Origin: Octopus bimaculoides
Lineage: Eukaryota
DNA: 64,000 nt
Reading direction: 5' to 3'
NCBI RefSeq assembly: GCF_001194135.2
Contig: NC_068994.1
Coordinates: 41,652,210 to 41,716,209 of the forward strand
Below, piece after piece: positions 43,838-47,220 of the stretch. Position 1 is the first letter of the stretch, and every line of letters begins with the position of its first letter. Both the position numbers and the translations under genes were made by a program. A model generated the notes under the pieces. It was not told the origin of the DNA. It saw nothing but the letters and a program-made list of their open reading frames with translations, and did not search any database.

Positions 43838-44230
43838 TTTTATATCAAGAGTGAGCCAGAGAAACAAAGCTATTTTGAAAAATCATATTAGATCTCAAGA
43901 GAATGTTACCACCAAGATGAGCTGAAGGACGTGAATGGACAGAGGCTGGCTGATCAAGTCAGACAAATTAAGATTAAGAAGTGAGTAGAAGTGAAACCAG
44001 AGAAAATTACACAGGCAATGAATGGAAAATGAACTTCAGTTCTCTGTAGATCCATAAGAAATACATGTTGCATAAGAGAATTAGCAGGGCATTGATATGG
44101 TAGAAAGAAATGATAATGATTATAAAAAGAATATAAACAAATACTCTAGAAGTCATGAACAAAGAATTATAGCAAAGAAAGGAGTATTGTAGTTGAAAAT
44201 TCAAACAAGGAAGTGAAAGGAAAGAAGTGT
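43838..44230 (+). mobile_element. N-terminal ORF fragment of a Dong/R4-type retrotransposon
   Basis: FYIKSEPEKQSYFEKSY*ISRECYHQDELKDVNGQRLADQVRQIKIKK resembles the YxxSxPxxRGY...EQRLADQxRxI N-terminal motif of R4/Dong ORFs (recalled family motif, not searched). Confidence 0.65.
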
Positions 44231-44499
44231 TCAATTATATCCATATTTCAGTGTTTGATATTATAACATAAGGTGACCAAAAAAATGTGCAAACGTTACA
44301 GAATAAAAAAGAAAAATACGTATGTATGAGTGTATGTATATATGAGTGTATGTATGTGTGTGAATATATGTATGTTTATATATGTTTTGGGAGATGTGTC
44401 AACAAAAGGTCAAACAAATAAAAAAAAAAGCAGAGTGGAATTTGTTTGAAAGAAAGTAAAGCAGGAGACAGACCAAGTAGTATAATGTCAATAGTGATA

Positions 44500-45480
44500 A
44501 CATATTTATAATGGTTTCAAATTTTGGCACAAGGCCAGCAAGTTTTGGAAAGGAGGCAAGTTGATTACATTGACTCCAGTGTTCTATTGGTCCTCATTTT
44601 ATCAACCCCGAAAAAATGAAAGGCAAAGTCGACATCAGTGGAAAATAACATCAATAATAATACTAAAGATAATAATAATAATAATAATAATAATAATAAT
44701 AATAATAATAATTGTTTCTATTACTGGTGCAAGACCTGAAATTATGGGAAAAGGGACTAGTTGATTATATCAACCAACCACAGTCTTTGACTGGTACTTA
44801 ATTTATCAGACCTGAAAGAATGAAAGGTAAAGTGGACCTCAGTGGCACTTGAATTCAGAACATAAAGCTGGAAGGAATGCTACAAAGCATTTAGCCTGGC
44901 ACAGTAACAATTTTACCAGCTTGCTGCCTTGATAATGGTAACAATAAGGATGATGATGATGACGATGATGATGATGATGATGATGATGATAATGATGATG
45001 ATGACAAAGATGATGATGGAGATGATGATGATGATGATGATGATGATGATGATGATGATGATGATGATGACGACGACGACGACGACGACGACGACGACGA
45101 CGACGATGATGATGACGATGATCATGATCATGATGATGACGATGACAATGATGATAACGATGATGATGATGATGATGATGATGATGATGATGATGATGAT
45201 GATGATGATGATGATGATGATGATGATGATGATGGTGATGATGATGATGATGATGATGATGATGATGATGATGATGATGATGATGGTGATGATGATGGTT
45301 TCTACCATAGGCACAAGGCTTGAAATCTTAGGGGTGGGGAGCTAGTCGATTGTATCAACCCCAGTGCTCTAGCGGTACTTATTTTATTGACACTAAAAAG
45401 ATGAACGGCAAAGTTGTCCTCAGCAGTATTTGAATTCAGAACATAAAGATGGATGAAATACCACTAAGCATTTTGTCAGT
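44500..45480 (-). mobile_element. Three SINE-A copies around (AAT)n and a (GAT)n tract of about 350 bp
   Basis: SINE-A at about 44510-44645, 44715-44930 and 45300-45480, with (GAT)n at 44950-45295. Confidence 0.85.
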
Positions 45481-45499
45481 CTTTACATTCTGCCAGTAT

Positions 45500-47220
45500 G
45501 CCATCTGGGACAAACAAGAGTGCCTAATAATCGATGTGGCAATGCCAGGAGATCAACATATTACCATGAAAGAAAGAGAAAAGGTTCATAAATATGGAGA
45601 GCTGAGAATTGAGATTGCCCAGATGTGTCAGCTATGGAGTCAAGCATAAAGGTTATCCCTGTTGTCATCAGAGCATTGGGTTCAATACCACCCAACCTGA
45701 AAAAACATCTGGAAACTTTAGAAATGCCCTACAATTTCGGTGTATTGCAAGAATTGGCTTTATTTGGAACTGTGTGCATATTGTGCAAAATATACTGTCT
45801 GACTGAGGTCCTTGTTATGACTTGACATATCTTCAATCTACAACATCACAATATTGGATATTGTGCGACATCTTCAACAATAATAATAATAATAATAATA
45901 ATAATAATGATAATAATAATGATAATGATAATGATAATAATAATGTGACAATCTGAAATGGGACATAAGCAGGTTGTGGGTCATGAAAAAGAGTAGATGT
46001 GATACTATAGTAATTGGCACACTTAGAAGTATCAGCACTCATCTACCAACATGGCTCAAAAAGATTGGTGCAAATCTAAAGATAGAAGACCTACAAAAAC
46101 CAGCATTGCTTGGAACTGCAAGAGTTCTCTGCAGGGTTCTTGAAGCATGATCAGTAAACAAGAGTCACTTTCCATCATACCCAGTAAAATAAGCCTAGAG
46201 TTTTCAACAAATAATAATAATAATAATAATAATAATAATAATAATAATAGCAACCATGCTATGGGATATGCTAATACACACAGATAGAGAAATTAGGGCC
46301 AATAGGCCAGATATAGTTGTCAGAGATCATGAAGAAAAAAGTGCTTTCTAATTGATGAGACCAATAAAATGAATCTTCATTGATATAGGACTACACGAAG
46401 ATCATAACATTATAAAGACAGAAAATGAGACAGCTGAATGGTATCAAAATCTTGCATTTGAAGGGAAGTGCATTTATAGAGCCTCAAATGGGGGTGTGAC
46501 ACCCATTATGATTGGTGCATTCAGAAACATCTCAAAGAACATATAAACCTGGCATGAGAAGTCACAACTACCAAACATCAATGGAAGTACAAAGTTAGCT
46601 ACCATGCTCAGAACAAGCACACGTGTTGAGAAGTATTGTGTTTCTAAGCTACAAGAAGGAGCTGAGACAAGACATAGATAACCCAGAGGAACATTAAAAC
46701 TTGGGAAAATCCCCAAAATAATATTAGTAATAGTAACAACAATAACAATATTAATAATAATAATAATCCTTTCTACTATAGGCACACAGACTGGATTTTG
46801 TGAGGCGAGGGACAGTCAATCACATTGACCTTAGTACTTGACTGATACTTAATTTATCAACCCCAAAAGATGAAAGACAAAGTAAACCTCGGCAGAATTT
46901 GAACTCGGAATGCAAAGGCAGACGAAAAGCCACTAAGCATTTTTCCCAGCATACGAATGATTCTGCCAGCTCATCACCTTAATAACAATCACAATAATAA
47001 CAACAACAGTTGCTATAATAATAATTAATTGGTGCAATTGGCACAACATCCAAACTGCTACCAATTATTGGAATTGAGACTTGCATTGTTGACCTGCAGA
47101 AAAGTGAAATCCTGTATTTGGCAAGAATCCTTAGAAAAATGTTTAAGATTTGAAGAGAATTGTTGTTTCCAAACCTCAACACAACATCCCTGCTAACTAA
47201 TATAGCTTGTATAAGTTTTA
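45500..47220 (+). mobile_element. Five separate Dong/R4-type RLE-domain 3' fragments in (AAT)n, with interleaved minus-strand SINE-A
   Basis: About 45500-45800 CLIIDVAMPGDQHITMKEREKVHKY...VIPVVIRALG; 45944-46149 LQKPALLGTARVLCRVL*; 46250-46345 LWDMLIHTDREIRANRPDIVV; 46368-46650 FIDIGLHEDHNIIKTENETAEWYQNLAFE...TPIMIGAF; 47028-47150 LIGAIG...DLQKSEILYLARILRK. Confidence 0.88.

Follow-up and report, generated by a model that had tools for sequence, protein, structure and literature searches.

Retrotransposons of the R4/Dong group combine a reverse transcriptase (RT) with a restriction-enzyme-like (REL) endonuclease, insert into ribosomal DNA (rDNA) or microsatellites and carry a Myb/SANT-like N-terminus without zinc fingers (PMC7998251). 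The elements Dong, DongAg and DongBg are TAA-specific (PMC3812793), and a self-cleaving ribozyme like that of hepatitis delta virus (HDV) is located at the 5′ end of Dong (PMC3774820). Among molluscs, R4-Dong elements are found almost solely in cephalopods (PMC10294476), and the repeat library of Octopus bimaculoides contains a Dong consensus (PMC9115989). Here we describe a 64-kb stretch of O. bimaculoides DNA (contig NC_068994.1, positions 41,652,210 to 41,716,209; hereafter the window, numbered from its first nucleotide) that contains remnants of such long interspersed nuclear elements (LINEs). The zone at 44.5-47.3 kb is very probably a composite built almost wholly by target-primed reverse transcription into one trinucleotide repeat, with at least four Dong lineages lodged in tracts that largely derive from a short interspersed nuclear element (SINE).

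The window is eukaryotic in character, AT-rich (about 34 % GC), dense in microsatellites and interrupted by runs of N, and thus stems from a draft assembly. Translated in six frames, 43.8-47.3 kb yields plus-strand stretches reading IIDVA..KEREK..KY, VIPVVIRALG, PALLGTARVL and NRPDIVV, with (AAT)n between them. Neither a first word-indexed protein search with a single fragment (F1, see below) as the sole query, which returned no matches, nor a comparison of six translated fragments with Pfam, which gave nothing meaningful, identified them. Using the alignment of the fragments as query led to six short open reading frames (ORFs) with the canonical pattern LIDVA..EK..KY..VIPVVIGALG..LGTAHILRKVL. 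The profile of those six ORFs, searched exhaustively against 1.84 billion representative proteins, matched 10,939 proteins at E ≤0.001, with the module always at the extreme C-terminus. For the window itself we used a C-terminal module profile built from about 150 relatives and an N-terminal profile built from 85 full-length relatives. Across the 64 kb the C-terminal profile matches six places, corresponding to five fragments (F1, F2, F3, F4 and F6; Table 1), and no others; scores do not exceed −3.3 bits in the reversed window or 2.5 bits in 100 local shuffles. SINE copies were mapped with nhmmer and a SINE profile, and tandem tracts were called with Tandem Repeats Finder (TRF).

A first-pass annotation of the zone had counted five co-oriented 3′ fragments of clearly different sequence, most of them bounded by (AAT)n. 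We confirm the common orientation and the differences in sequence and revise the count in the zone to four, since the third and fourth of those pieces (46250-46365 and 46370-46716) are parts of one element, F3. A single profile alignment passes through both halves of F3, which contains a 10-codon (30-bp) in-frame insertion, and the full-length profile gives one match of 61.1 bits over 46253-46630; MAFFT had misplaced its N-terminal half when this was treated as a separate fragment. F3 spans WD..TD..NRPDIVV to the C-terminus and keeps NRPDIVV..IFIDIG, with three in-frame stops and a degraded EK..KY motif with mutated lysines. F1 is interrupted by a single frameshift near 45640, retains the nuclease motifs IIDVA..KEREKVHKY and ends in a stop codon (45823-45825) followed by a 3′ untranslated region (3′ UTR) of 53 nt. 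F2 is open over 68 codons, with neither stop nor frameshift, and terminates naturally at 46148-46150, leaving a 3′ UTR of 59 nt; the stop of F4 lies at 47151-47153. The nuclease motifs (RPD / IDV / EK..KY) are found in F1 and F3 only, while F2, F4 and F6 represent the conserved C-terminal tail that follows them. The 3′ fragments are 160-470 bp long. Flanking (AAT)n on both sides holds for F2 and F3; the flanks of F4 are degenerate AAT-like sequence with no clean tract, and the 5′ end of F1 adjoins a SINE head at 45506-45512 instead of (AAT)n.

The same annotation had recognised an N-terminal remnant upstream, from the residues QRLADQVRQI, and this piece (F0) is real by our controls: it scores 13.3 bits, while 30 shuffles do not exceed 0.6 and the reversed sequence gives −1.9. 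Its translation, FYIKSEPEKQSYFEKSYxISRECYHQDELKDVNGQRLADQVRQIKIKKx, is cut at both sides. An N-terminal profile of only four sequences had scored F0 at −2.5 bits against −2.4 reversed, which is noise; the 85-sequence profile separates it. As also noted in the first pass, the RT domain is gone: the full-length profile finds no RT of the Dong family at 43-48 kb, and all Dong copies in the window are dead.

An RT fragment elsewhere in the window (11684-12232, plus strand; ..LLYADDFALIA.. followed by CSICRKGMGRNSIRCTRCKL) was considered as a Dong piece and assigned to a different LINE, as the match at 11.7-12.2 kb scores just 6.5 bits with the Dong profile.

The proteins recovered by the profile search include the full-length relatives that the first-pass annotation had proposed to look for. 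They are 1000-1400 amino acids long and consist of a conserved N-terminal region, RVT_1, a CCHC zinc motif and the RPD..IDV..EK..KY endonuclease at the extreme C-terminal end. Pfam reports RVT_1 and zf-RVT in them, and no Myb/SANT family is listed at E ≤0.01. The N-terminal pattern W..EE..E.MW.Y ... W..RNP ... L..QRR.I is conserved in 85 of 112 full-length relatives; it is the region matched by F0, and its Myb/SANT fold is putative. Relatives are widespread in arthropods, including shrimp, many Lepidoptera (among them a Spodoptera frugiperda protein), psyllids and beetles. The nearest solved structures are R2 proteins (8gh6, 8ibw, 9nl2, 9nl3 and 9dou), which match weakly over the RT-to-CCHC region (E 5e-28 to 1e-14, about 100 bits). 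The full-length relatives thus have the RT-CCHC-endonuclease order of the Dong/R4 group, of which the copies in the window have lost the RT, and insertion in fixed orientation into (TAA)n with a (TAA)n 3′ end is observed both for the fragments in the window and for the relatives. This supports the assignment of the fragments to a Dong-type, (TAA)n-specific LINE with a restriction-like endonuclease.

We examined eight loci with relatives (L001-L008). The SINE of the window is absent from all of them, and they therefore come from other taxa. At all eight an AAT-type tract, read on the coding strand, closes the 3′ UTR of the element, so that relatives inserting without an (AAT)n preference, an outcome that would have counted against the first-pass reading, were not encountered. 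Three loci (L002, L003 and L004) are head-to-tail arrays of full-length copies in which the next 5′ end follows directly after the tract, and L001 holds a 5′-truncated copy flanked by (AAT)n on both sides. This stacking is as expected if, as the first-pass annotation proposed, each tail regenerates the target. In the window, all five 3′ fragments are followed on their own strand by an AAT-type tract, and four are also preceded by one, that of F4 being degenerate. Rfam models matched no ribozyme in L002-L005, whether in the loci as such or at their 5′ ends; sequence-based models often miss the HDV-like fold.

Two further features of these loci were noted. A conserved CTGA(G)GTC...GAC(T/C)TGA is found at or after the stop codon in the window (45800-45830), L001 (7697-7730), L002 (4727-4765) and L005 (7497-7525). 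It is 85 % identical between F1 and L001 over 34 nt and can be drawn by eye as a hairpin in L002 and L005 (GGTCTC GGAT GAGACT); it may be a 3′ UTR element recognised by the RT. Within the head-to-tail array of L002, a non-coding insert of about 1 kb (4868-5860) has long (AAT)n on both sides and may be a non-autonomous element sharing the Dong target.

At the nucleotide level the fragments of the window are unrelated to one another. Comparison with blastn gives no match between them at E <0.37, and pairwise Smith-Waterman z scores range from −1.5 to 3.0, which is shuffle noise, compared to 34-60 for four SINE copies of the same zone that are each 18-26 % off their consensus. Amino-acid identity is 24-38 % among the fragments (at least 33 aligned columns) and 45-52 % between each fragment and its best foreign relative; at the DNA level F1 and F3 match foreign relatives, not each other. 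Judged by sequence, the fragments are separate insertions from different Dong lineages and not local duplicates because they share no pairwise nucleotide similarity, F2 is intact over its 68 codons, F1 has only its single frameshift and the 3′ UTRs differ in both length and sequence. The first-pass idea that several Dong lineages used one locus thus stands. Tract purity (100 % for the F2 tail, 87 % for the F1 tail, 77 % for the F3 tail and degenerate surroundings for F4) gives only a hint of relative age, with F2 as the youngest fragment and F4 as the oldest.

The tracts themselves lead to another element, one that the first-pass annotation had not connected with the target. About 33 copies or pieces of one tRNA-like SINE of about 213 bp are found in the window. 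A (TTA)n tail, read on the strand of the SINE, is carried by 8 of 11 aligned copies and by 11 of the 23 copies whose 3′ ends are intact, with (ATC)n and poly-A among the variants. Every one of the eight SINE pieces that nhmmer places between 43071 and 47805 is on the minus strand, in agreement with the opposite orientation reported for them before. Read on the plus strand, the (TTA)n of minus-strand SINEs is (AAT)n, and SINE tails thus make up most of the (AAT)n zone. Each of the five Dong 3′ fragments runs antiparallel to the SINEs nearest to it, and three of them (F3, F4 and F6) meet a SINE 3′ end tail-to-tail. F6, which is outside the range covered by the first pass and on the opposite strand to the other fragments, interrupts the (ATT)n tail of a plus-strand SINE (21868-22083), dividing it into 4 and 58 units. 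The orientation is accounted for by the tails: the sense tail of Dong is (TAA)n and that of the SINE is (TTA)n, so that a Dong element in a SINE tail must point the opposite way.

We propose that minus-strand SINE copies with their (TTA)n tails would have laid (AAT)n on the plus strand, which Dong-type LINEs, encoding a single ORF, would recognise as (TAA)n in one orientation. The Dong endonuclease would nick the (TTA)n strand, and the freed 3′ end would anneal to the (UAA)n terminus of the Dong RNA and serve as primer. Synthesis would mostly stop early and leave 5′-truncated inserts, while each new Dong tail would renew the target and allow later lineages to stack upstream. F3 and F4 would have landed beside SINE 3′ ends, with F2 and F1 stacked upstream in tail-renewed tracts (or in another order), and F6 would be a fifth event of the same process in the plus-strand SINE array at 22 kb. 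Such strand-specific targeting would place each Dong copy antiparallel to the SINE whose tail served it. Of this scheme, we infer the strand that is nicked, the order of events and the use of SINE tails, instead of earlier Dong tails, as first targets. SINE tails are likely the original Dong targets because F3, F4 and F6 lie tail-to-tail with SINE 3′ ends.

Table 1. Dong-like pieces, SINE copies and repeat tracts of the two zones (positions in the window)
Feature	Positions	Strand	Basis
F0: N-terminal remnant, Dong-like ORF	43838-43984	+	85-sequence N-terminal profile, 13.3 bits
5′-truncated SINE copy within tail tract of next SINE	44503-44643	-	nhmmer E 7e-34, model positions 93-233
(AAT)20, the (TTA)n tail of minus-strand SINE 44699-44935	44653-44712	+	TRF
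Full-length SINE copy	44699-44935	-	nhmmer E 8e-59
(GAT)116, 349 bp, the (ATC)n variant tail of minus-strand SINE 45286-45512	44949-45297	+	TRF
Full-length SINE copy, head adjoining F1 5′ end	45286-45512	-	nhmmer E 1e-61
F1: Dong-like 3′ fragment	45506-45878	+	profile 31.7 bits (45509-45631) + 29.8 bits (45646-45825), two frames; tblastn E 3e-13
(AAT)22, F1 tail and F2 5′ flank	45879-45944	+	TRF
F2: Dong-like 3′ fragment, C-terminal tail alone	45945-46209	+	profile 39.1 bits (45950-46165); frame +2 translation
(AAT)13, perfect (100 % matches), F2 tail and F3 5′ flank	46210-46249	+	TRF
F3: single Dong-like 3′ fragment	46250-46716	+	C-terminal profile 49.5 bits (46253-46549)
(AAT)17, degenerate (77 % matches), common to F3 3′ end and tail of SINE 46755-46985	46717-46767	+	TRF
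Full-length SINE copy, tail-to-tail with F3	46755-46985	-	nhmmer E 4e-63
F4: short Dong-like 3′ fragment (LIGAIG..LQKSEILYLARILRKMFKI, then stop)	47031-47200	+	profile 6.2 bits (47028-47174)
3′ part of SINE copy, tail-to-tail with F4	47234-47343	-	nhmmer E 1e-15
(ATT)4, flank of F6	22071-22082		
F6: Dong-like 3′ fragment (IQKIAPLGTAHILRKTLSIQ, then stop and 90-nt 3′ UTR)	22083-22243	-	profile 25.5 bits (22116-22253)
(ATT)58, flank of F6	22244-22417		

Several points weigh against this account. The 5′ end of F1 lies at a SINE head and a later event, SINE insertion or deletion, therefore reshaped that junction, so at least one junction was remade after the Dong insertion. F4 is weak at 6.2 bits, which is nevertheless above the best shuffle and the reversed window. 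Part of the amino-acid divergence among the fragments could be decay, and independent decay alone could mimic the pattern. A tract at the 3′ end can be target or a tail made by the element, so that the evidence for targeting comes only from the 5′ flanks of F2, F3, F4 and F6 and from the relatives. Neither the order of events nor the proposed priority of SINE tails is dated. Finally, the clade placement rests on architecture, target and literature and not on a tree with reference Dong (L08889) or R4 (U29445).

This last point leaves room for an origin of the pieces in another endonuclease-bearing clade (R2, NeSL, Hero or CRE), or in an unnamed clade that gained (TAA)n specificity independently, and the absence of a detected HDV-like ribozyme at the 5′ ends of the relatives and of a listed Myb/SANT family would fit such an origin as well. 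We nonetheless consider it improbable: the published description of Dong (PMC7998251) is matched in architecture, in (TAA)n target and in a putatively Myb-like N-terminus lacking zinc fingers, R2 proteins match the relatives weakly, and relatives are frequent in Lepidoptera, the order in which Dong was discovered; they include a Spodoptera frugiperda protein, and the Dong alignment of PMC7998251 likewise contains an element of that species. It is very unlikely, too, that the elements have no target preference but make their own (AAT)n tails, from templates or by slippage, and cluster by chance or in a tolerant, gene-poor, AT-rich region. In favour of this, the window is full of microsatellites and repeats, and an (AAT)30 tract at 54611-54700 has no Dong copy. 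Yet AAT tracts lie directly at the 5′ ends of F2, F3 and F6 too, F6 splits a SINE tail, the relatives start right after (AAT)n with three loci forming arrays, and all Dong pieces of the 64 kb fall within two AAT/ATT-rich zones with matching orientation; (TAA)n is moreover the published Dong target (PMC7998251, PMC3812793).

A different question is whether the pieces are independent of one another. Descent of all fragments from a single insertion, multiplied locally by tandem duplication or unequal crossing-over in the microsatellite zone, would suit their adjacency and common orientation, the slippage favoured by repeat-rich DNA and the internal 30-bp insertion of F3, which resembles a local duplication. 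We find this hardly credible given that no pair of fragments retains the nucleotide similarity that the SINE copies do, that the 3′ UTRs are unlike and that F2, with its clean codons, is not heavily decayed. Local duplication, which the first-pass annotation had named as one outcome that would contradict it, is thereby excluded save for the merger of its third and fourth fragments into F3. An unlikely but far less strained possibility, and one compatible with the composite origin proposed here, is that a single full-length Dong copy left F0 and F1 as its two ends after its RT middle was deleted and replaced by SINEs. The two are on the same strand and in the correct order, and the 1.5 kb between them is mostly three SINEs and tracts. 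On the other hand, the full-length profile finds no trace of the intervening ORF of about 2.8 kb between them, F0 is truncated at both sides with no (AAT)n or 5′ UTR upstream, and F1 begins at a SINE junction.

The SINE copies are themselves arranged in same-orientation, head-to-tail clusters with short (TTA)n joins, at 862-1531 (minus strand), 21868-23345 (plus), 43071-47805 (minus), 52566-52985 (plus) and 56345-56873 (plus). Copies within clusters are about 75 % identical to one another, which suggests that tails already present serve as insertion sites for the SINE or its LINE partner as well; the alternative is old tandem duplication. Regarding the composition of the tails, a Dong relative of another organism ends in (GAT)10(AAT)9 (L007, 748-794), and GAT and AAT tracts at SINE or Dong tails seem to interconvert and expand. 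The (AAT)30 tract mentioned above is adjoined by neither a Dong end nor a SINE and represents an unoccupied potential target.

Other observations concern the wider window. It contains at least 11 runs of N, including 23606-24186 and others near 3.4, 16.7-17.2, 17.5-18.1, 20.3-21.1, 25.1-25.7 and 34.2-35.0 kb. These assembly gaps often begin inside microsatellites: the (ATT)n at 23333-23605 runs directly into a gap, in which more SINE or Dong copies may be hidden. A 34-bp minisatellite at 58769-59514 (about 20 units, 80-92 % matches) can be read as an open frame (ORF 58902-59714) in which P, L, S, T and H abound. The 6 kb at 34000-40000 show a strong GC skew (up to +0.53) and microsatellites of GT, GA, GTG, GTA and GGA type.

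That Dong inserts into (TAA)n is already known, molluscs included. What is possibly new is only the dependency between SINE and Dong, for which the window offers three tail-to-tail cases in 64 kb. The locus is a textbook case of a site-specific LINE for which a microsatellite is a harmless landing pad, and it records several lineages in one place; the landing pad is the tail of a different and far more abundant element, which fixes the relative orientation of both. If this holds genome-wide, SINE expansion would be linked to the persistence and diversity of Dong in the lineage, and a simple rule for annotating composite repeats would follow. It is conceivable, and we put it forward tentatively, that one repeat duplex serves two guilds of retroelements: the SINE and its LINE partner would prime on (TAA)n and stack head-to-tail, and Dong would prime on (TTA)n and insert antiparallel to them. 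Expansion of the SINE would in this way open a niche for Dong and renew it continually, which could explain the near-restriction of mollusc R4/Dong elements to cephalopods (PMC10294476). Such an arrangement predicts antiparallel, tail-to-tail pairing of Dong 3′ ends with SINE 3′ ends throughout the genome. No bearing on host gene function is apparent.

Compared to other known systems, the elements of the window share with R2 a restriction-like endonuclease and target-primed reverse transcription, and R2 is the nearest family with solved structures. It differs in its N-terminal zinc fingers and its 28S rDNA target, and membership of R2 was rejected on the (AAT)n target and the weak match of the structures over the RT. 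R4 of Ascaris and other nematodes belongs to the same clade according to the literature, with RT, REL-endonuclease and Myb/SANT-like N-terminus (PMC7998251); its target is likewise 28S rDNA, whereas the elements of the window and all examined relatives lie in (AAT)n. Kibi, Koshi, Waldo and Mino resemble Dong in that they insert into a defined microsatellite and their tails renew their own target, but their targets are other repeats (TC, TTC, ACAY and AC) and they are listed among the elements with an apurinic/apyrimidinic (APE) endonuclease (PMC3812793). The closest likeness, judged by architecture and target and not by direct comparison with a reference sequence, is to Dong of Bombyx mori, DongAg of Anopheles gambiae, DongBg of Biomphalaria glabrata, Dong1/2 of Darwinula stevensoni and the Dong consensus of O. 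bimaculoides. These have the same single ORF with RT and C-terminal restriction-like endonuclease, (TAA)n at both junctions in fixed orientation and 5′-truncated copies, and their Myb/SANT-like N-terminus without zinc fingers has a putative counterpart in the relatives and F0 (PMC7998251, PMC3812793, PMC9115989). The window differs from them in holding dead fragments only, with neither RT nor 5′ end, in the presence of several unrelated lineages side by side and in the nature of the tracts, which are the tails of SINEs.

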